DNA of 64,000 nucleotides, taken from positions 1 to 64,000 of the forward strand of contig JAHLWZ010000808.1 of NCBI GenBank assembly GCA_020536535.1, given 5' to 3'. Below the pieces are notes generated by a model that searched no databases, had not been told where the DNA came from, and was given only the letters and a program-made list of their open reading frames with translations. Shown piece by piece: positions 3,158 to 45,146 of this stretch (positions are counted from its first letter, which is position 1; the number at the start of each line of letters is the position of its first letter). Origin of the DNA: Pelomyxa schiedti. Lineage: Eukaryota > Protista > Evosea. Both the position numbers and the translations under genes were made by a program.

Positions 3158-4816
3158 ATGAGCGGGGGCGGAGGCATGGACAATCCCATAAGTAACGCTA
3201 TGGTGATGCAGTTGCTGCTAGGTGGGGGAGGCGACGGAGGGTCTGTTTTTCTCTTTGTTTCCAGTATTTTAAACACCCTAAAGGAAGTCGGACAGTTCTA
3301 GCTGCAGTCCAGCTGTAAACCTCCAATTTTTTTTTTCCCTTTTCTAAAAACTTTGTCAGATAAGGTTTCTGTGAAATTGGTTTTCTCTCTGCACTTCTAC
3401 AAGAAACAACTAGCCAAAAAAAAAAAAAACCAATTCCAATACAAAACCAACCCTCCAAAAAAGAAGCTCAGATGACAGAACTTCAAAAACCAAAGACGGG
3501 CACTTGACAATGTGGGTGGAGGCACCCAATGACGACCCAAGGGGAGCATCCCCCAATTCCTCTGGGAAGAGGTACTGGTGTGTACTCAACAAAACAGTGC
3601 GGGAGTCATCTTCTCCCTCTCATATATTGCTGATTTATCACAGCAGTAAGGTATATGATGCTTTAATTTGTCTATGAATACATCTCACAAAACATAGTCA
3701 ACACATAGTACACGTAAGATAGATCTATCTACTGTTTCCCATATCAGCCGAAGTTATAACAGTAAGACAAAAATTTTTGGCATCACTCTGCATACCCCCG
3801 AGCACAACTACATTGTACAGGGAAAAGACCAGAGAACAACTGAAGAATGGTAAACATCTCTTTTGTTTTAAAGTCTAAATTAATCTTTGGTTGGGTGCAA
3901 TACAAACAGGCAAGCAGAGTTTGATAAAGTGCTTACAGACTTTAACAAAAACACCACTCACACAACAAGTGATGATGATGCTGAATGTGGTACATATGTT
4001 ATAAAAAATGATGTACCTGACTGTCCTGATTTTTCTGCGCGATCATTGGAGTTGTGGGAAGAGAATCTTGTAGCTTTGGATAGAGGGGAGTGGAGTGCAG
4101 GATTGGAAGAAAATATTTGTGCCTTCAAGAGATACAAGAAGAAGAGATTGCCACTCCCTTCCCAAGCAACCCTGAGGCGAATGACCAAGTCAAGTAGGGA
4201 GCCAGATTCACCACAAACCGAGCCCGCAATTATTCCCAATGCTCTTCTGATGCAGAGTGCACCTGTTATGAACAGCATGGCATTCGACCTTTCACAGTTC
4301 TCCTCAGCATCCCAAATTCCTGATATACCTATACGTTTGGATCCAGATTTAAATGTCGACGGGATCACACTGTCTGACTTTACACTCCAGAAAACAACCA
4401 CCAACTCCACAACAACCACTTCGACATCACCAACATCAACCCCGTCGATATCATCCACCCCACCAACACCCCTGTCCTCACCCGAGCCCCCGCCAAAGAA
4501 TACCCCCAAGAAGCCCAGCCTGTCCCCTATAGACACCGAAACCTCACAAGGATCCAACAACAGTAACAGCAACAGCAACTCCTCCGCACACTCGCGCTCA
4601 TCCAATTCACCATCCAACTCACCCACCCGCCAGCATTCCAGCAGTGCAACATCACACCGCCGGTCATCGTCCTCCCGCAATACTACAGTGGACACTTCTG
4701 GTGCCAAAAAGCCTTCTCCATCATACCTGTCACAAGTTTTCCCTTCTGGCAGACACCACAGCAGTCACAGGAAGCACCAGTCAGTGATGGAAGCTCCCTC
4801 CAACAACAATTCCTGA
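3158..4816 (+). CDS. PH-domain protein with a Ser/Thr/Pro-rich disordered C-terminus (multi-exon)
   Basis: Exons encode GHLTMWVE...KRYWCVLNK and GITLHTPEHNYIVQGKDQRTTEEW, the typical PH-domain end with its Trp. Last exon is ORF 3887-4816. Confidence 0.7.
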
Positions 4817-4919
4817 TGAGATTTATGGGGGTGGGGTGTTGTATAGGTGCACACAACAAACAGTACATATGGTAAAAAGAAACAAATTGTTTTAGTGATA
4901 CACACTATAGCACCCTCAC

Positions 4920-6890
4920 TCAGTTGGCCTTTGGTGGCACTGTTTGGGGTTCTGTTGTATCTTTTGGTTTGGCCGGCTCTGCTGCAGTCTTGTTGCCAGT
5001 GGCCTTGCTATCTTGTGGTTTAATAGCTGTTGTTGAGGAAGGTACCTTGGGCTTAGTGCCAGGTGGTTTGGTAGTATTGGGATTTGTATGACCTGAAGGC
5101 TTAGTTGTTGGTTTGGTAGGGGAGGTGTTATGAGGTTTTAATGTGGGTTTGGTGGTTGTTGCTCCCCCTGGGGGTTTGGTGGGTGTGGAATGCAATAAGC
5201 CGGGTTTAGTGGCTGCTCCTGGCTTGGTTGAGGTTCCTCCTGGTTTGGTGGGTGTGGAATGTAATAAGCCGGGTTTGGTTGTGGGTTTGGGTTTGGTGGG
5301 GCTGGTTGGGTTGGTGGGTTTGTGGGTGTTATTGTCTGCTGCTCCCGGTTTCACTCCGGGTCCGGGTTTTACTGTGGGTGTTTTGTGATCAACTTTGGGG
5401 TCTGGCTTTGGTACTGGGGGTTTCACTGGTTTGGGGGCCGGCTTATTGGGGTCAGGTTTAGTGTTGAGGTCCGGTTTTGGTTTTGGTTTTGCTGGGTCTG
5501 TTTTGGGTTTTGTTGTATCTGGTTTGGGTTTTGCTGGGTCTGTTTTGGGATCGGGCTTCTTGGGGGCTGTTTTGGGATCTGGTTCAGTTTTGGGGTCTGC
5601 CTTGGGCTTCACTGGGTCCGTTTTGGGATCAGTTGTCTTGGGTCCGGTTTTAGTATCTGTGGGTGGATCGGTTTTAACTACATCTGGTTTTGTGCCAGTT
5701 TTTGTAGTGTTAGTCTGAGGAGGTTCGGGATTTGTTGTAGTAGCCGGAGTCTTAGTGGGAGGATTGTTACTCTTAATATCCACTTTATCTGGATCGTTGG
5801 AAACGGGCTTTGTGGGCTTGGTGGGCTTGGTGGGCTTTGTTGGGCTAGGCTTTGGGTCCGTTTTTGTACCTGGCTTATCTGCCCCCGGTTTGGTAACCCC
5901 AGGAGTTTTTTGGGTGTTATTGCCATTGGGCTTGGGCTTCGTTGTAGCTGGGACACCCGGTTTAGTGGTTGGTTTTGGTTTTGGATTTGGATTTGGTTTC
6001 GGTTTCGTGGGTGTGGTCTTGTCGTGAGTATGGACAGGAACACCAGGCTTCACAGTCGGATTGGGAGCCGGCTTGGGCTGTTTTCCCCCAGGCTGCTTTG
6101 GGGGTGGAGATGGCAGAGTGGGAGCAGGAGTGAGCCCAGGGAGTTTGGTTGGCGGCGATGTTTTGCTGCCTGGCTTGGCAGCGGGAGGGCGCGTGGGGGA
6201 CGAAGAAGGCGGCAGGGGTTTTTTCGGGCCTGGGGGCGAGTGTGTGGGACTTGGCTTGGGGTTTTCGTTCGCAGGTGTACTGGTGGTTGTGGTTGTGGTT
6301 GTGTGAGTGTTTGTACTTGTACCTGTACTTGCGTTGCCATTTGGGGATGGTTTGGCAGCAGTCTTCTTGGCCGATTTCGTAAGAGGTTTTGTTGGGATGA
6401 CTGAGGGCTTCGCAGTAGTAGTAGTCTTGGCGGAGTCCGTCGGGGGTTTGCCCTTAACGGAGGCACTCGGCGCGGCGGCGGCGGCGCTGCGGGAGACAGC
6501 CCCTGGGGGTTTTCCCTCCTTCTCTGGTGGGACATCGGAGGGCTCCAGGGGGGTCGTTTCCGTATGTGCACCGTGGTCCTCCGCGTCGCTAGGTTTCTTG
6601 GGTTCTGTGGCTTGTTGCTGCTGCTGCTGTTGCTCAGGCTCTTTCTCGTGTGGTTGTTCTTGGTCCTGCTCGGCAGGGGCTTGTTCCTGTAAGAAACTTA
6701 AGCAACACGAGAAGAGAAAGAGGAGGGGAACTCTCACCTTTGGCTCCTGGTGATCATCACCATCAGGTTGGGCATTTGGCACGTCGTTATGGTCATCGAC
6801 CTGGGGGACCGGAGGAGGCTCTGAGGGTGTTGTTTGGTCCTCAGCGGTTTCCGTCGCGGGTTGCACGTTGGTTTGGTTGGCGTCGCTCAT
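4920..6890 (-). CDS. Low-complexity Pro/Thr/Lys-rich repeat protein (TKP/KPKP/DPK motifs) with an acidic N-terminus; function unknown
   Basis: 667-codon ORF; first ATG at 6890 (MSDANQT); one 51-nt in-frame GT-AG intron at 6687-6737; internal duplication KPGLLHSTPTKP. Confidence 0.7.
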   Translation of the reverse strand: MSDANQTNVQPATETAEDQTTPSEPPPVPQVDDHNDVPNAQPDGDDHQEPKVRVPLLFLFSCCLSFLQEQAPAEQDQEQPHEKEPEQQQQQQQATEPKKPSDAEDHGAHTETTPLEPSDVPPEKEGKPPGAVSRSAAAAAPSASVKGKPPTDSAKTTTTAKPSVIPTKPLTKSAKKTAAKPSPNGNASTGTSTNTHTTTTTTTSTPANENPKPSPTHSPPGPKKPLPPSSSPTRPPAAKPGSKTSPPTKLPGLTPAPTLPSPPPKQPGGKQPKPAPNPTVKPGVPVHTHDKTTPTKPKPNPNPKPKPTTKPGVPATTKPKPNGNNTQKTPGVTKPGADKPGTKTDPKPSPTKPTKPTKPTKPVSNDPDKVDIKSNNPPTKTPATTTNPEPPQTNTTKTGTKPDVVKTDPPTDTKTGPKTTDPKTDPVKPKADPKTEPDPKTAPKKPDPKTDPAKPKPDTTKPKTDPAKPKPKPDLNTKPDPNKPAPKPVKPPVPKPDPKVDHKTPTVKPGPGVKPGAADNNTHKPTNPTSPTKPKPTTKPGLLHSTPTKPGGTSTKPGAATKPGLLHSTPTKPPGGATTTKPTLKPHNTSPTKPTTKPSGHTNPNTTKPPGTKPKVPSSTTAIKPQDSKATGNKTAAEPAKPKDTTEPQTVPPKAN

Positions 6891-7073: not shown

Positions 7074-8405
7074 TTATGGTGTGTACTGGAAATGGGCTAG
7101 AGAAACTAACACAGACTCGCCCTGGCTTTGCAGCCCAACAGTGGGCCATAGTGACTGTGGGCTCAAATTGCTCTGCAAGCGGAATATCTCCTTGCCATTC
7201 ATTGTCCAGTAAATCATTCCCGTAGCACTCACACCACAGCCAACAACATCGCCATCTTCCCACGTGGGGAGAGAGGCAACTACTTTGCCGTTTGCAAACA
7301 CACTGCCATCGTCTCCTTGATGTCCAAACCTACACGTTGAGAGTGTGCCTGTTGATTGGATGAAGATTTGCAGTTGATAGTGACGCACGAGTTTTTGACC
7401 CAACCAGGCTGATTGGTGTGTATGTAATTCTCAAGTGCTAAACCAACTCCAACTGCGCCCTTCCACCCAAGAGAAATCATCTTTGTAATGTAAGAGAATT
7501 AATAAATTCCCAGTTACACACTGTGACTTCAAAGTATGGAATATGCAGCTTCGGCATTACCTACCAGAAGACAGTTAATATTGAAATGTGTTGATACGCC
7601 GACCTGAAACGACCCAACAGGCGGCCCAGAATTACTTATATATGTAACAAACGCATCAGAAATTGTTAGGTGAGGTGATTTTGATGAAATTGGGAAACTA
7701 GGCGAGATCCATGAAGAAAGTTTGTCGATGAAAGAGGTGGAATTTGGTTTGGCCCGTACGCCACTATACCTCCTCATGGACCGCAATTTGCCAATAATAA
7801 GTGAATCTGCCATTCTATTTAGGGATGTTCTATTAGGGTACAAGACTCTTACATGGGGGAGGTTCCGTGAACTTGACTATCTCAATTAAAGTTCCAAATG
7901 AGAGGTTCCTCAGCGGAGAGTGTACACTGGTACGTGGATGTTTTCCTGCCAAAAACGCAGTGACACAAGCTTTCCAAGGTTTACGAGAATCTTTCAAGTC
8001 ATTACTGAAAGGTAAAGTACATCTCTGCCATCACCAAGTAATGCAGGATCAGGTAGATGATCCACATCTTCTTCGTTGGCACTTACAGCAGTGATAGTTG
8101 CTGAAGCGGACAATAGTTTCTCTTGATTTTCGGGCGAATCAAGCAATCGGCATGAAACCAACTGCTGTAAGGCACGAAGTACCACTAAGCAAAGGCACCA
8201 AATGGTAATTTAGCTCGCCATTGCATTATAATACATTTTTGGTGCCGTTTAAACAGGTGATGACTTGGTGCAGAGAGGAATGAGTACATGGACGATCATA
8301 CGCAAGGGTCGTGTCGTCCAACCCAGCCACTGTAAATATGGGTCGCCACTTTTCAGGCAGCGACGGGCATTCTGGCCTTTCAATCCACAACCGTCTGCCA
8401 GCCAT
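7074..8405 (-). CDS. SPRY-domain protein (RanBPM/SPRYD3-like SPRY type; multi-exon)
   Basis: C-terminal exons GAVGVGLA...QPGWVKNS|..FGHQGDDGSVFANG...WEDGDVVGCGV...IYWTMNGK...LWPTVGLQSQGESV. Start MAGRRLWIERPECP at 8405. The 3' end is uncertain. Confidence 0.7.
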
Positions 8406-8578
8406 AGGGTAAAAAAAAACCGAATTTTAAGAAGTGAGATGCAGTCTCCGCAGGTATCAGGACGATACTGGAGCCACGAGACCACTGAAGATTGTTGCCT
8501 GCAGCGTTCTCTGCACAGAACCTCTTCAGGCCCGGAACAGTGATGGTAACCGAGGAGGAAAAAAAACCCAGTATTTAC

Positions 8579-10851
8579 ATGAGCGCGTCGCAGCCTGGGG
8601 AGGGCACCACCAACTCCGGCGACACACACTCCACCACCACCACCACGACAGGGGACGGCAGTGGGGCCAGCAGCGGGAACGGCCCCGGCACAGCCCCGGG
8701 CGGGGGCGCGGCCACGTCGCTGTCGTTCGCGCTGAGGCAGCCGACGAGGCGGAAACCCGTGGCGCCCTCTGCCCGCTCGGGGCTGTTCGACCAGGCGGAG
8801 GGCGGCGGCCCGGCGCAGCCCACGACGCAGGCCCACGACACGGAGGAGCAGCGACGGCAAGCAGTAGGCGAAGGGGCGGCGGCGGCAGCGGCGGCGGCGG
8901 CGAGCGGAACGCCCCCCTCTGCGGCCACTACCACGGCCACAGCCACCTCCACCGCCACAGCCACCACAACCGCGTCTTCTTCGGCCCAAGGGGGAGGGGA
9001 GAGGGAGAAGGAAAGCAATCACGGCGGCTCGAAGGAAGAGCAAGAGCGAGAGAAGGAGAGCGGCGGAGTGGGAGAAGGAAAGGCGGATGGGGAGGGGGAG
9101 GGGGTCAGCGGAATAAAATGCGGCAGCGGCTCTTCCGGTCACGGTCACGGTCACGGTCACGGTAACGGTCACGGGCGTGAGGGTGAGGAGGGACAGGAGT
9201 CGGCACTCGACCGCGACTCGGAGACAGCATCATCGGCTGTGGTGGACAAACCCTCAGTTGGTCCTATTGCGAGAGGTGACTCTGCTGCGAATACTGGTAC
9301 TAGTATATCATTTTGTCATGTGCTGGAGTGACCTGGGACATTTAGGAGTCACTGCTGCGAACGGTACTGGTAGTGCTAGTACGCCTGTGGAACCACCGTG
9401 GAAACACAGGAGGGTGGCGGCGAGGCAATCGCATTTTGGTTTGGCTTCCCTCCTCGCTCTCCTTGCCAACACTCAACAAACTCCTGCAGGAGAGGTTGAC
9501 CCCACTATAGCTCGATTTGGATCATTTCCTCTGGGCAAGTAAGAATCTTACGCCAATTCAAGTTTTTTCTTGCCTACACACTGAAGTCCTAAAATGGACT
9601 TCTTCTCAAATCCTTTCAGACTAAAAACTTCCTGCTGAAGGTTAGAACCAGAGTGCAATTTGGGATTTTATACACCACAGTTGCAAAACCTGGTTCCACA
9701 AAGGCAACCTCTTGCACGGACAATACCACAGGTATAGCTACAGTTACTTATACCTCATTTGTCTAAAATTCAATTGTGAGACACCCACTATGACAGATTT
9801 ACCCCAGAACCAAAGGTACATCGAGTTTCGCAGCAATTCTCACTACGAATAGAGTGAGAGAAACTTCAACTGGACAGACAGTTGCCACCCAGATAGCAGT
9901 ACAGGTTGCTGCAGCAAGAGCAGCAGCCGTCGTTGCCGCAGCAACTGCAAATTCAACTTCACTACAAACTCAATCCTTTAATTCAACTCTACTGCACCCA
10001 CCAAGGCTACAACTTCAATCCACATCTTCACTCCAACTTCAATCCAAGCCTCCAAACTTGCAATCGACCGCCCTGCTGCAACCGAAGGCCCAACTACCCG
10101 TCCCACAGACCGCCATGCAAATTCCTCCGACGAATCAATCCACAGTGCCATTGCCTCTGTCTTATGCACAAGTACAGTTCCAGGCGCAAAACTCACAGTT
10201 AGCACCTCAGCTGCAGGCACTGTTACAATCACAACCTTATCTACAACACATCCCACAACCTACCCAAATCAGTGTGCCAATGCCTCTTTCCGATTCTACC
10301 CAAGCAGAATCCACTACAGGAAAACCTGGTGAATCCAAGAAAAAGCAGAGGGCACACCATATTGGGGACTACCTCCCAAAAGATGAATTACAAAAATTTC
10401 TATCATTCCAGCAGCAGGTACAACGGGTTCCCACACCTTACAGAGAAATAATTTCAACCAGACAGCAGTTCCGGATGATTCAAGCACTGATAAGCTCACT
10501 GAAGAAAATAAGGGACACCAAATGCTACTCAAGATGGGCTGGCGAGAAGGTCATTATGATAGATTCACTTTATCTTTTGTAAATAATAATAATAAACTAG
10601 GCACTGGACTTGGTGCCTCAGGCACAGGGAGGGTTGATCCTATTACCGTTGACGGAGGCCACAAGGTGGGGGGCATTGGGTCAATCAGACCTGAAGAACT
10701 TGCAGCAACAGATGATATATATGAGCAGTATAAAAAAAGAATGATGGTGTCGTACAGATACCGCCCTAATCCTATGGTATTTTCAACCCATCATTGCTGG
10801 AGCTAAATCCCAACAACTTAACAGAACAATCCCAGAAAGAGTTACTACTAA
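8579..10851 (+). CDS. SUGP1: SUGP1/SF4-like G-patch splicing factor
   Basis: C-terminus [16 protein letters not shown]...[19 protein letters not shown]|[14 protein letters not shown]...[22 protein letters not shown]|NNPRKSYY* matches the characteristic SUGP1 G-patch and terminal RPNP-NNPR-YY motif. Confidence 0.85.
9137..9174 (+). repeat. (GGTCAC)n hexamer repeat encoding [13 protein letters not shown] in the SUGP1-like N-terminus
   Basis: Direct tandem repeat seen in the sequence. Confidence 0.9.
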
Positions 10852-40074: not shown

Positions 40075-42051
40075 ATGCTTGGGCAAGCTGATGACGGTAC
40101 GAGTACTGGCGCTGCGCTTGCGCCGACTCCGGGTATCCAACCGTTGAATCTCGATTGCATCGTCGCGATGCTTCATCAACAACAATCTCACCCCTTGCAA
40201 CAGTTGCGGCGACGCCGCCGTCGTTCAAGGCCGAGGACGAACTGCAGAAGGCTCTCGGCCGGCTCAGCGCCGGCGCGCTGCGCTCCTCCCTCGACTGCGT
40301 GACGCCGTCCACCGCGGAGCAGACAAAGTCGCTGGGGCGCGAGCAGCTGTGCGACTTGTACTTCAAGCAGGTGGCGCACTGCGCAAACTCGGTGCTGGTC
40401 AACGACTCGATGACGCAGGCCATGCGGGAGGAGGCCGCCGGCGTCCTGGGCGTGTCGACCGACGACCTGGGCGCCGTCGTGGACCGCAATGGAATAACGA
40501 CCTATTTCCGGCCCCCAGACCCTCTTCAAGCCATTTCACAACAGTTGGCTTTTTCCCCCTTGGTTCTTTTTCTAAATGATTTGGCAGTTGAATTTGGATC
40601 AAACTGAGGATCCTATTGGATTACATATAAAAATCGTTGACGAAATAATGCTTTCTGGGGTGGAAATCTTTCTTCAAAAGCTTTCTCAACAAGTTCTTAG
40701 GTTTCACAAGCTCTCATTTGCAATAATTGATTCCCCCCTTCATTTCTTTTTTTCCCCCCAAAAGCCAGCATAGTGTCGAGTTGAGTCTCAATCCTGCATC
40801 AACTGAACCAACGGCAATCATTGAAGCTTTTATGTCAGAAGTGTTTCAGCTGGAACCTCCATCTTCAGTTCCTACTTCGTCTGCTACAGCTACAGTGCAA
40901 GAGGCACCAGTTGGAGATCCTGATAGTTCGACACCAAAACTCTCCACTCCAAAACAGACTGAAACAGATTCAAAAGAAGCTGTTGACAAATCCCGAAAAA
41001 ATAATGTGGAGGAAACACCTAAAGGAAAAGACAAAGACAGAGACAAAGACACAGATAAAACAATGGAGGAAACACCTAAGGGAAAAGACAAAGCCAAAAC
41101 TGAGGATAAGAAACACCACAGGGGAAAGAGAGACAAAAAGGACAAGAAAGGAAAAAAATCCAAGAAATCCAAGGATGACGAGGAGCATAAAAGGAAATCC
41201 AGTGCTAGTTGCAAATCACCTAAAAAATCATCCAAATCAAAAAGGAAATCCTCCAAATCATCTCACAAATCTAAGTCACACAAGCACTCCAAATCTTCCA
41301 GCAGTAGCTCAGATAGTGACAGCTCCGATAATCACAAGTCAAAAAAAGGGTACTGGGGCCCTGATCACCGCTGGGTGTCACCACCACTGGAATGCATCAA
41401 GAAGGGAGCGTAAGTCTCCTCTTTACTGCCCCTTTTTAAAAAACTATGAAGGTACACAGCGATTACCATGGATACAAATTTCCACAAGTCGGCCCTTGAT
41501 GAATATCTGGCAAAAAATGAATTGCCAAAGTGTCAAACAAAGAAAAAAGCTGTAAAAATGATTCTGGACTATCTAGACGGGAAGGCAATTTTGGTATTTA
41601 ATTCCATCATCCTTTCCTCTTATTTACGAACCCATGTTCTTTATAGCCGAAAAAGCGAAAGAGCAGGAAGGGCAGGAGAAAGCCAAAGAAAGACAAGAAG
41701 GGAGAGGAAGGAGATGAAGCAGCGCAAGCTGGGAATGACACCACTGAGCAAAAAGAGGACCCAGAAGCCAATGGTGAAGCAGAGGACGCAAATGCCGGGG
41801 AGGAACCAAATGAACCCAAAAGCAAGAAACCCCGCACAACAACTACAGAGCATGAGCATGAGCATGAGAACGAGAACGAGAACGAAACAAATGGAAATGT
41901 CAGTCCTCCATCACCTTCCCCAATCCCACTGGGCTCAGGACCCGAAACAGAAACGAATCCAACCTCTAAAAGTGAGAGCCCTACCACACACCCAATGCCA
42001 GAAGCAACAGGAGCCCCTGATGTGTCACTTAGTGATCAACCCCGAGAGTAG
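40075..42051 (+). CDS. Lys/Ser/Glu-rich nuclear-type protein with a SAP-like helical motif
   Basis: Spliced MLGQADD|VAATPP...; K/D/S-rich tract; PPLECIKKG|..FHKSALDEYLAKNELPKCQTKKKAVKMILDYLDG (SAP-like spacing); basic PKKRKSRKGRRKPKK cluster. Confidence 0.5.
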
Positions 42052-42286
42052 TTATGTTATGCTAGGCAATGAATGTAATGTGCATTTTCAAAATTAAACT
42101 CAACTCCTACAGGTTTTATGAAGCTGGAGAATAGGCACGAGCACTCACCTCTTGTGTTTTTGGGCACAAGGAAAAAAAAAGGAACTTTTTCCTTAATGAT
42201 GTATTGTTGTTTTCTTACCAAAATTTTACTTTCAGTAAAATAACAAGGGGTTGAGTGTGGTTATGGGTAACTTGATTGAGGTGACC

Positions 42287-44471
42287 TTACATTCCCACAA
42301 GGAAGTTGGAGAACTGTAGGGGGTCATCTGGGTCCCTTGGTGCTTTTTGTAATTTATTGTGGTTCTGTCCAAAGTCAGTCCAGCTTGAAAAAACAAGGAA
42401 ATTTGAAACCTGTAGTGGGTGCCAATTTGTCCAATAGCCTCTGCAGCCCAAGAAGGGTTTCACGAAATCGATTATTTCATTGTGATCCATGTCTGTAACG
42501 GAGTAAAGACCAAGAGCAGAACTAGGGTAAACTTGTACACACCACAAGGTTCTATCAGGCCGGACATGGGGTGAGCGACTGCCCACCTGAAACCTGCTAT
42601 GACCCCGTACGTTACAGGGCATGTTGTGGCATTCACTCTCACATGGGGCAGCATTTGCTTAACCTTTTCAATGGAGATATTGACACCATACCTAGATACA
42701 ATAAGAACAAGAAAGAAGGTTATGGCACCCGGAAAGCATGCCATAGCCAATGCATGAAACACACCAATATCCTCCAAGCTTACTGCCAAGTAACAACATC
42801 CCATATTCATCATAACCACCTGGTAGAATATTGGGAGGAAGAAGGATACGATGTCGCGTTTGGGAGACAAAATCATTCTCCGCCAACTCTCTCAAAGATA
42901 AAACAGCATCGTCACAAGGGTGGTAAGAGTAATAAGTAGTGGGACGGTAAATGTCTCGTCCTGTGCTTGGATCTTTGATTGTGAGGAAGTCGGCAAGCTC
43001 AAGGCACTACAAACAGTTGGTTTTTTGTACCAAGAAAGAATATTTGTTACCTCATAATGAGTGGTCAAGGTTCCAAAGTGAGGACCTTGTTGAGGGCACC
43101 AGGTTTTAACTGTAAAATGTGAGCCACGCCGTTGAGCACAGAGCGGTAAAAACCTGTACACAGTGCACTTGGTCTATCAAGCATGATAGCAGACTTGGTT
43201 CCAGTTGTGTGCTATTTTGGTGCTAAGAACTTCGAAATAAGAATAAACGTACTAACCAACAATGCTCCATCCGGTAATCTTCTTTCATGGGTACCCCAGC
43301 CCATCTCAGCCGGCTGAAGTAATTCTTCAATGTCTAGGTGAAAGTCAGTGTACCAGGTCATTACAGAGGAGTCATACAGCCAATAACGGACCATGTCTGA
43401 ACGAACTCGCCCTTCTTTTTGGGTACTGAGGACTGCTGTCCGTCGCGTTCAGAAACTTGAATAATCTAATCATGATCAGGGCAGTGGATTTTAGGAGGTA
43501 ACAGTACGCGAATTCCAAGGCGTTGGCACAGGGCAGCCCACTCTTCTTTGTTTGTGGGTATTGGTGGTGCTACGCCGTCAGTAGCTGTTGCAATCTCGTA
43601 AATTCCTTGCTTTGCAAAGGATTCGGCCAGTCCAGGGTTGGCACCATGTGAAGTTACTGGATGGAGGATGGATGTCAGAAGTAGTTATGAAGTCATGGGG
43701 GAAGTAGTACTAGCAGTGGTCGAGCAACCCTTGAAGGCGCCAAGACGTTGGCGGAGGGTTAAAAATTTATTCCTTATGGAGTAATTACTTCTGTCCTCCA
43801 TTCTAGACCAGTTTAGTTCTGAAACAGTGTTTCGAAGCATACGATATATTAGGATCCATAAAGCCATCACCCCACGGTTCTAAAGAAGCGTCTTGATAAA
43901 GAATTCTTCTACGCTGGCAGTACTCAATCAGCTCCAAGCTCCCGACAGCAACAGAAAGGTTGAGGAGGAAGTCACCTGGGCTTAGGTATCTGAAGAAAAG
44001 TGGGTTCATGGAGTGTATGAGGTCAGTAACACACGAGTCAAGAACTGATGTATAATTCTCTTTGGTGAACTTCTGGATTACGTAGCGCATGCCAAGGCTT
44101 TCAACAGTGGACCTTCCTTTGAAAAAATGGGTACCAAAATACAGTCTCGTAACAGGGGGAGTACCTCCATTATCAGCAGAGAGGACAGTGACTAATGCCG
44201 GGTCGAGGTTCACGTAACGAATGATCAAGGGCAGTACGCCTTTGCGCGAAATTTACTAAACGAATGCCGCAACGTGTAAACAAAGAAGAAGCGCACTTTG
44301 AGCAATGACACCTGCGCCCATCACGAGCAGTTTATTGCTCCAGGTTGGATTGGGGGACACATGGCCCATCAACATTTCCACACGTCGCGAAGCAGACGAC
44401 GTAACAGCGGGAGTGGTTCCATCGGGGGCGGATGTCGAAGACCCGGCAGATGCGCTAGCTCGCGTGGACAT
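42287..44471 (-). CDS. hss: Homospermidine synthase, bacterial type (saccharopine-dehydrogenase-like fold), intron-containing
   Basis: LLVMGAGVIAQ|SVLPLIIRY (NAD-binding), GDFLLNLSVAVGSLELI..LYQDASLEPW, SHGANPGL, IQVSERD...GEFVQTWSVIG|YIEELLQPAEMGWGTHE, VKTWCP..G..TTHYE, YRPTTYYSYHPCDDAVLSLRE, NATTCPV, DPDDPLQFSNFLV*. Confidence 0.92.
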
Positions 44472-44816
44472 AGGGCTGTGCCTTTGTTTTTTCTTTTTTT
44501 TTTTTCTTGTTGTTTCTATGTTTTTTTGGTTTGAACTTTTGTTGCGTTTGCATTTTGCTGAAGTCCCCTCAAATAAGGGCCCACTATTTGTGGAATGATC
44601 GGTGCTTCTCGCAAAACATTTCATCTCATCAAGTGCATTTGCACTTGTTCGAGCAAACAGTCAGGCCACCCCCAATAACCGCCGAGGCCGTTCTCCCTTC
44701 TCCCAAGTTGAGCTTCTAGAACTACTAATGAGAATTTGGGACCAGACACTGAGTGAAAGGGTTTTTGGTAAGAATACTTGGATGTTTTTTTTCCCCCTTT
44801 GCTTGTGGATAGAAGC

Positions 44817-45146
44817 TCAGTCCTTCAAGAAGTTGAGAGCACCCGTCTTGAATTCCTCCCACGAGATCTGGCCGTCGTGGTTGGTGTCCATCTGAATAGC
44901 TTGTAAGTGGAGAAAACTAGTTTGGCCAGGGGGGAAACCGTTCGGAGGACTTCGTCAGCCATTGTAACGACTCTATCGGCAGAGGCTCCAGCGTGTGTTA
45001 GTGCTGCTCGAATTTCGTCAAGCTGAATGAACCCATCGTGGTTCCTAAGGAGCCTTGTTAAGGACATAGCAACGCGGCATATCAAGTTTAACGGAGGCGC
45101 ACTTGTCCCAAAGATCGAAGGCTTCACGTAGTTTCGCCTCGGTCAT
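44817..45146 (-). CDS. Small two-EF-hand calcium-binding protein (74 aa, three exons)
   Basis: MTEAKLREAFDLWDK|NHDGFIQLDEIRAAL...ADEVLRT|MDTNHDGQISWEEFKTGALNFLKD*; two canonical 12-residue loops. Confidence 0.9.

Follow-up and report, generated by a model that had tools for sequence, protein, structure and literature searches.

The nuclear genome of the amoeba Pelomyxa schiedti (assembly GCA_020536535.1) contains, on the 130,492-bp contig JAHLWZ010000808.1, a gene that raises two connected questions, namely which enzyme it encodes and how a gene of such marked bacterial affinity came to stand among the genes of an anaerobic protist. The gene, Pelo_11047, lies on the minus strand of the 64,000-nucleotide stretch that was analyzed here (the window), whose positions are numbered as in the contig record. 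The best explanation of the evidence as a whole, to which we assign a probability of about 0.85, is that Pelo_11047 encodes a functional bacterial-type homospermidine synthase (HSS), that its gene (hss) came from a bacterium into an ancestor of the pelomyxid amoebae, and that it was then domesticated, duplicated and maintained by purifying selection. Bacteria were probably the source of hss in diverse single-celled eukaryotes (PMC9992855), and in Paramecium homospermidine has taken the place of spermidine (PMC13625781). Since bacterial hss genes in protists had already been published in these two studies, the novelty claimed in an initial annotation of this DNA, made from the sequence alone, was overstated; what is new here is a member from the Archamoebae.

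The spliced protein of 517 amino acids (aa) is letter-for-letter identical with KAH3757133.1, the database entry for Pelo_11047, which is filed as "hypothetical protein". It contains the Pfam domains PF03435 (Sacchrp_dh_NADP; residues 49-180, 68.8 bits) and PF16653 (Sacchrp_dh_C; residues 195-479, 56.9 bits) and no other Pfam domain. In a search against all PDB sequences, it matched the HSSs of Legionella pneumophila (2PH5, 395 bits), Pseudomonas aeruginosa (6Y87, 388 bits) and Blastochloris viridis (4PLP, 351 bits) from residue 39 or 48 to residue 515, and the best match to a solved HSS ran end to end with an E value of 3e-117. At a threshold of E 1e-3 the same search returned no other chain of the saccharopine dehydrogenase family, the remaining matches being marginal TAL-effector repeat proteins. 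The AlphaFold model of the protein has a mean predicted local distance difference test score (pLDDT) of 85 and a predicted template modelling score (pTM) of 0.86, with residues 1-37 disordered. The 21 top matches of this model in Foldseek were all HSS chains, with template modelling (TM) scores of 0.83-0.87 by model length and 0.92-0.95 by chain length and root-mean-square deviations of 1.7-2.8. After a wide gap, carboxyspermidine dehydrogenase followed as the next family (TM about 0.53, 10-13% identity), and then the lysine and saccharopine dehydrogenases. A profile search with the exon pieces of the window and the HSS of Methylorubrum returned only close alphaproteobacterial HSSs. NCBIfam gave zero matches for three amoebal HSS proteins, which is taken to mean that this library has no HSS model reaching the amoebal proteins, and not as evidence against membership. 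On the grounds of sequence and modelled structure, Pelo_11047 is confirmed as encoding a predicted bacterial-type HSS (EC 2.5.1.44) with the saccharopine-dehydrogenase fold.

The comparison with related enzymes points to the same assignment. The bacterial HSSs of B. viridis (4PLP/4XQ9), L. pneumophila and P. aeruginosa have the same two-domain fold (TM 0.87/0.95) and about 39% identity end to end, and share with Pelo_11047 the eight catalytic or substrate-binding residues discussed below, the NAD-binding loop and a C-terminal P(W/L)QF motif. The motif series listed in the initial annotation is present in full in the spliced protein, comprising GAGVIA (residues 52-57), DASLEPW, HGANPG, SERD, QTWSV, QPAEMGWGTHE, THYE, YHPCDDA and the terminal PLQFSNF. 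Unlike the bacterial enzymes, Pelo_11047 is encoded by a nuclear gene of a eukaryote, interrupted by 13 introns, is extended at its N-terminus by about 45 residues that include the conserved motif RVxx[LM][MA]xH[VM], has two residues inserted before the NAT motif (PHVRVNATT), and has replaced the equivalents of Asp-94, Val-115 and Tyr-123. Carboxyspermidine, lysine 6- and saccharopine dehydrogenases or reductases belong to the same superfamily and contain the same Pfam domains, but with 10-13% identity, TM scores of about 0.4-0.54 and no sequence match at E 1e-3 their similarity is far below that of the HSS matches, and membership in these families is not supported; in the tree described below, which was built from HSS homologs, the neighbors of the protein were all HSS homologs. 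The HSS of plants, derived from deoxyhypusine synthase, makes the same product, homospermidine, but has an unrelated fold and catalyzes another reaction, the transfer of an aminobutyl group from spermidine (PMC13625781). The claim that the enzyme is of the bacterial and not of the plant type was thus upheld by the PDB matches, by the fold and by the presence of saccharopine-dehydrogenase Pfam domains only.

The coding region extends from an ATG at 44471 to a TAA stop ending at 42287, and all of its 13 introns are of the GT-AG type, with lengths of 40-73 nt (Table 1). It was recognized in the three-frame translation of the minus strand as a chain of open segments with HSS motifs, for which the plasmid-borne HSS of Methylorubrum served as guide, and the longest open segment by itself gave matches both to HSSs of solved structure and to the NADP domain of saccharopine dehydrogenase in Pfam. 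RNA evidence came from contigs of four single-cell transcriptome runs labelled "protist metagenome" (X1-X4), which were compared with the window. These contigs contain, on the minus strand, the spliced joints of every one of the 13 introns, and the transcript anticipated from the DNA was in this way corroborated. A gene model made from DNA with the Methylorubrum guide (10 introns, 563 aa) aligned with that protein end to end (37% identity, E 5e-103) and was ruled out by the RNA, which showed three further introns beside the 10 already predicted. The three new ones (introns 2, 3 and 13, of 48, 45 and 45 nt) preserve the frame, contain no stop codon and were revealed by RNA only. Introns of this kind mimic lineage-specific insertions and are a pitfall for DNA-only gene models in the P. 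schiedti genome; the reading-through of one of them produces an apparent PLQVSNFLV/PLQFSNFLV repeat. For intron 12, which has two possible donor sites, the RNA shows which one is used. RNA coverage ends at about 44360, so that the ATG lies outside the RNA-supported part, and the N-terminus is conserved in the second P. schiedti copy, Pelo_3573. Genes of P. schiedti have on average 7.43 introns, of which 98.4% are GT-AG and 1.6% GC-AG (PMC8887013), and on these figures a gene that is rich in introns and uses a GC-AG site now and then is typical of the genome.

The RNA contigs agree with the window DNA with zero mismatches but for one base. At position 43939 the contig of run X1 has T where the DNA has C, which changes Ser128 to Asn on the coding strand at a near-invariant position; this difference may stem from an allele, from an error or from editing.

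Table 1. Features of the Pelo_11047 locus in the 64,000-nt window of contig JAHLWZ010000808.1 (X1-X4, RNA contigs of the four single-cell runs).
Feature	Coordinates	Strand	Content	Following intron	Support
Whole coding region of Pelo_11047	42287..44471	-	14 exons, 13 introns, 1554-nt coding sequence, 517 aa		model, RNA joints and identity with KAH3757133.1
Exon 1	44297..44471	-	N-terminal extension of ~45 aa and start of Rossmann fold	intron 1, 44296-44240 (57 nt)	joint 44238->44296 in X1
Nonapeptide RVEMLMGHV (residues 30-38), similar to peroxisomal targeting signal type 2	44358..44384	-	conserved in four amoebal HSSs		
Dinucleotide-binding loop GAGVIA (residues 52-57)	44301..44318	-	GLGTIA at the same place in P. 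aeruginosa HSS		
Exon 2	44165..44239	-		intron 2, 44164-44117 (48 nt, in frame, stop-free)	RNA joint 44115->44164, cut +1
Exon 3	44035..44116	-		intron 3, 44034-43990 (45 nt, in frame, stop-free)	joint 43989->44035 in X1
Exon 4	43843..43989	-	E148 (= Glu-117)	intron 4, 43842-43803 (40 nt)	joint in X1, X4
Exon 5	43711..43802	-		intron 5, 43710-43657 (54 nt)	joint in X1-X4
Exon 6	43508..43656	-	HGANPG, N197 (= Asn-162)	intron 6, 43507-43466 (42 nt)	joint in X1-X4
Exon 7	43378..43465	-	SERD (E246), QTWSV (W265)	intron 7, 43377-43334 (44 nt)	joint in X1-X4
Exon 8	43257..43333	-	E273, QPAEMGWGTHE	intron 8, 43256-43212 (45 nt)	joint in X1-X4
Exon 9	43154..43211	-		intron 9, 43153-43110 (44 nt)	joint in X1-X4
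Exon 10	43051..43109	-	THYE (H332, E334)	intron 10, 43050-43007 (44 nt)	joint in X1-X4
Exon 11	42765..43006	-	YHPCDDA, Y360, Y362, D400	intron 11, 42764-42692 (73 nt)	canonical joint in X3
Alternative GC-AG intron within intron 11	42692..42741	-	50 nt		joint 42690->42741 in X1, X2
Exon 12	42543..42691	-	T437	intron 12, 42542-42493 (50 nt)	joint in X1-X3
Exon 13	42410..42492	-		intron 13, 42409-42365 (45 nt, in frame, stop-free)	joint in X1-X4
Exon 14	42287..42364	-	terminal PLQFSNFLVGM and TAA stop		model; RNA contigs
3' untranslated region	42235..42286	-	at least 52 nt		X1 contig extends to 42235

The catalytic and substrate-binding residues of the B. viridis HSS are Asn-162, Glu-210, Trp-229, Glu-237, His-296, Glu-298 and Tyr-323, as well as Asp-361 (PMC4725965). 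All eight are kept in Pelo_11047, as N197, E246, W265, E273, H332, E334, Y360 and D400; the residues were mapped by HMMER alignment to 4PLP, in which the chain numbering runs two ahead of that of the paper, and were checked in the sequence. Glu-117, Tyr-325 and Thr-396 (B. viridis numbering) are kept likewise. By analogy with the solved bacterial HSSs, the Pelo_11047 enzyme should work as they do. Tightly bound NAD+ would oxidize one putrescine to an enzyme-held 4-aminobutanal or imine, a second putrescine would attack this imine, and the NADH formed would reduce the Schiff base, giving sym-homospermidine and ammonia with no net use of the cofactor.

Three further amoebal HSSs were found. The second P. 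schiedti copy, KAH3764555.1 (Pelo_3573, 516 aa), also filed as "hypothetical protein", is 92% identical to Pelo_11047 and falls with it into one 90% cluster. It lies at 8001-10177 of JAHLWZ010000276.1 between unrelated flanks, with SecE upstream and a class-V aminotransferase downstream, and only the gene itself can be aligned between the two loci (70% nucleotide identity). Its 13 introns stand at coding-sequence positions identical to those of Pelo_11047. Between the two copies the nonsynonymous divergence (dN) is 0.064, the synonymous divergence (dS) is saturated, and dN/dS is about 0.03; as judged from these values, the pair arose by an old duplication, and strong purifying selection acts on both members. 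Mastigella eilhardi, represented by a transcriptome in EukProt, has an HSS of 499 aa that is 52.5% identical to Pelo_11047 over the whole length; it was retrieved with a single exon as query, and its sequence in turn retrieved both P. schiedti proteins. The third gene belongs to an uncultured relative (ENA ERZ21831265, contig ctg81258l, 179.5 kb, GC content 39%), in which an intron-split HSS of 499 aa with 64% identity occupies 3605-5558; it was found through the match of a 106-aa fragment and modelled with a custom spliced aligner, which in a self-test reproduced the 13 introns of Pelo_11047. This gene has 11 introns of 36-51 nt, of which 10 coincide with Pelomyxa introns in position and phase and one is private; it lacks Pelomyxa introns 4, 9 and 10. 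Therefore most of the introns predate the split of these lineages. The uncultured organism, whose contig comes from a metagenome assembly, is probably a further pelomyxid amoeba.

The position of the amoebal proteins among HSSs was examined by searches and phylogenetic analysis. A search of 5.8 billion proteins returned, after the four amoebal proteins, bacterial or metagenomic HSSs as the best matches, with 42-47% identity. For the trees, sequences were added from 80 bacterial genome loci (Alpha-, Beta- and Gammaproteobacteria plus a small number of others) and from 80 viral contigs, the bacterial open reading frames being chosen by best BLAST match; the best bacterial loci had 38-44% and the viral contigs 30-40% identity. 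The final maximum-likelihood tree comprised 58 rows, all of them HSS homologs and with no outgroup family; four very long rows (P0143, P0258, P0269 and P0201) were left out, and no Legionella sequence was included, although Legionella, the source of the best solved match (2PH5), had come into consideration as donor. In this tree the grouping (Mastigella, (environmental, (Pelo_11047, Pelo_3573))) forms a clade with 100/100 support, which lies inside the bacterial HSSs and has a stem 1.29 substitutions per site long. A transcript from the choanoflagellate Salpingoeca kvevrii (P0173, EukProt) was placed beside the alphaproteobacterium Falsiroseomonas with 100/91 support in one build and in a polytomy in the other. 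This transcript is HSS-like with a C-terminus that looks frameshifted, and it may represent an acquisition of its own or else stem from bacteria contaminating the culture.

Several observations weigh against a functional HSS of bacterial origin. Three residues along the substrate entry path differ from those of B. viridis (Asp-94 is A125, Val-115 is S146 and Tyr-123, a loop residue, is F154), so that of the 'ionic slide' Asp-94/Glu-117/Glu-237 only the two glutamates, E148 and E273, are kept. A GC-AG splice variant of intron 11 that retains 23 nt, shifts the frame and yields a truncated product of 439 aa is present in two of the three long RNA contigs, from two runs; in the third run the productive form, with the 73-nt GT-AG intron, is seen, and the contigs give no ratio between the two. 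In the tree, whose sampling did not extend to known eukaryotic HSSs such as that of Paramecium, the amoebal clade is joined with 97/93 support to a Kaiserbacteria sequence and to one sequence adjoining bacterial two-component genes, and the approximately unbiased (AU) test does not reject the union of the amoebal clade and S. kvevrii as one clade (p 0.205). The three substitutions, together with the Rossmann loop GAGVIA and the long branch of the amoebal sequence relative to bacterial HSSs, would suit an enzyme with the HSS fold but with shifted specificity, for other diamines, for spermidine as aminobutyl donor or for NADP, and hence with a different main product. Such a shift is unlikely in our view. 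The eight named residues are all conserved, and the Legionella HSS has Gly and Phe at the positions of Asp-94 and Tyr-123; because this enzyme too is without the Asp and has the Phe, these positions are regarded as variable in the HSS family. The altered cofactor preference that the initial annotation had considered possible for GAGVIA was not borne out, since the P. aeruginosa HSS with the same Gly-to-Ala change (GLGTIA) was crystallized with NAD and putrescine, and the Ala is confined, among the amoebal HSSs, to both P. schiedti copies (GAGING in Mastigella, GSGVIG in the environmental relative) and is thus no feature of the clade. An acidic residue follows strand 2 in Pelo_11047 (SAD; AAE in Legionella). 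Read from these sequences, the replacement is a recent, NAD-compatible Pelomyxa change that gives no reason to expect another cofactor. The idea of bacterial contamination, or of the dead relic of a transferred gene, could draw only on the bacterial affinity of the protein, and it is refuted by the 13 spliceosomal introns and their removal in RNA, by the eukaryotic genes around it on a 130-kb contig, and by the intact frame, the low dN/dS between the copies and the conserved active site. The called neighbors on this contig encode EF-hand, GRAM/VASt, HSP20, TMEM145/GPR180 and HAT-repeat splicing factor proteins; called genes were used here because Pfam scans of the long open reading frames of the window outside the HSS gene were uninformative, the genes being split by introns. 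The argument from short GT-AG introns against contamination, already made from the DNA, was therefore sound.

As to the origin of the gene, an ancient eukaryotic hss that was inherited vertically and lost in most lineages would agree with the age of the gene, with its many introns (10 common to two lineages) and with the lack of any compositional anomaly (GC content of 48.3% in the coding sequence and 46.6% in the window). The AU result adds to this, and the tree alone therefore leaves room for a shared eukaryotic origin. Vertical descent is nevertheless improbable: the nearest non-amoebal relatives among the 5.8 billion proteins are all bacterial or metagenomic, the free trees do not join the amoebal clade to Salpingoeca, and eukaryotic hss genes have been described as patchy and bacterially derived (PMC9992855). 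Delivery by a giant virus instead of directly from a bacterium appears less probable still. Working HSSs are known from giant viruses of amoebae and algae (PMC9992855), homologs occur on the 80 viral contigs, and the tree points to no particular donor of the amoebal gene, but the low identity of the viral sequences and their separate groups in the trees, none of which adjoins the amoebal clade, speak against this route. The viral HSSs, from chlorovirus PBCV-1 and from Imitervirales such as Tupanvirus and Harvovirus, are members of the same enzyme family outside bacteria, and unlike Pelo_11047 their genes have neither introns nor the N-terminal extension. An old bacterial gene that was taken into the pelomyxid amoebae and fully domesticated is the best reading of the sequences. 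Lateral acquisition is favored because the clade lies within bacterial diversity, because the best non-amoebal matches are bacterial or metagenomic, and because the eukaryotic distribution is patchy according to the literature. The grouping with the Kaiserbacteria sequence is not taken to indicate the donor, because of the long branches and the polytomy of the backbone. The domesticated state of the gene, part of the initial annotation's proposal, and its apparent age are supported by the introns, the RNA and the tree position; the transfer itself we infer, given the polytomy and the AU result. Most likely, hss would have entered from a bacterium into the pelomyxid archamoebal ancestor common to Pelomyxa, the uncultured relative and Mastigella, would then have gained the N-terminal extension, which is specific to the eukaryotic proteins, together with numerous very short spliceosomal introns, and would later have been duplicated in the Pelomyxa lineage.

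The N-terminal extension of about 45 aa is present in all four amoebal HSSs and lacking in bacterial HSSs. It contains a nonapeptide with the sequence RVEMLMGHV in Pelo_11047, RVGVMMGHM in Pelo_3573, RVEVLMAHM in the environmental relative and RVSTLATHV in Mastigella, so that the consensus R-V-x-x-[LM]-[MA]-x-H-[VM] holds in four of four amoebal proteins; a looser form of this pattern was found in none of 372 other HSSs within the first 60 residues. The AlphaFold model has a low-confidence helix across the nonapeptide. Peroxisomal targeting signals of type 2 (PTS2) follow the consensus R-[LVIQ]-x-x-[LVIH]-[LSGA]-x-[HQ]-[LA]. RVEMLMGHV fits it at positions 1, 2, 5 and 8 and departs from it at positions 6 (M) and 9 (V), and the Mastigella peptide fits at eight of nine positions. 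In P. schiedti the peroxisomes are anaerobic and the PTS2 receptor, Pex7, is present, and the published PTS2 screen used the pattern R[LI]x5HL (PMC8887013), which is stricter than the motif of Pelo_11047, so that this protein would escape the screen. It is tentatively conceivable, although doubtful, that the extension is a variant PTS2 that would send homospermidine synthesis to the anaerobic peroxisomes found in free-living Archamoebae; it is more likely that the nonapeptide has a structural role or is conserved by chance. If targeting did occur, a polyamine step performed by a laterally acquired enzyme would be added to a poorly understood organelle.

In literature searches for homospermidine with Pelomyxa or Mastigamoeba, and for polyamine lateral gene transfer in Archamoebae, no report was found, and neither the gene nor polyamines in general come up in the paper on the P. 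schiedti genome or its supplement (PMC8887013). By the present assignment, two P. schiedti genes so far labelled "hypothetical protein" acquire a function, and the anaerobic Archamoebae join the protists with a bacterial HSS. The HSSs of other protists, such as that of Paramecium tetraurelia (cited in PMC13625781; PMC9992855), likewise derive from a bacterial hss in a protist nuclear genome; the lineage of Pelo_11047 differs in belonging to the Archamoebae within Amoebozoa, and the likeness to Paramecium is by description, not by sequence. Archamoebae with hss are predicted to make homospermidine by a triamine route independent of O2 and S-adenosylmethionine, either in addition to spermidine or in its place. 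The clade offers a clean example of gene domestication, with 13 very short introns, ten of them cross-lineage, a duplication of which both copies were kept, and a new N-terminal extension. The current understanding of polyamine evolution is unchanged by it, as bacterial hss genes in protists are already part of that understanding.

Some minor features were observed around the gene. A long T-rich low-complexity tract, on the complement of the coding strand, occupies 44474-44519 immediately upstream of the ATG. The next upstream gene, likewise on the minus strand and encoding a 74-aa EF-hand protein (about 44817-45146), follows at a distance of only about 345 nt. Downstream, a convergent neighbor on the plus strand (40075-42051) encodes a 545-aa product without any Pfam family, and its stop is about 235 nt from the stop of the HSS gene; the 3' untranslated regions of the two genes may be close or overlapping.

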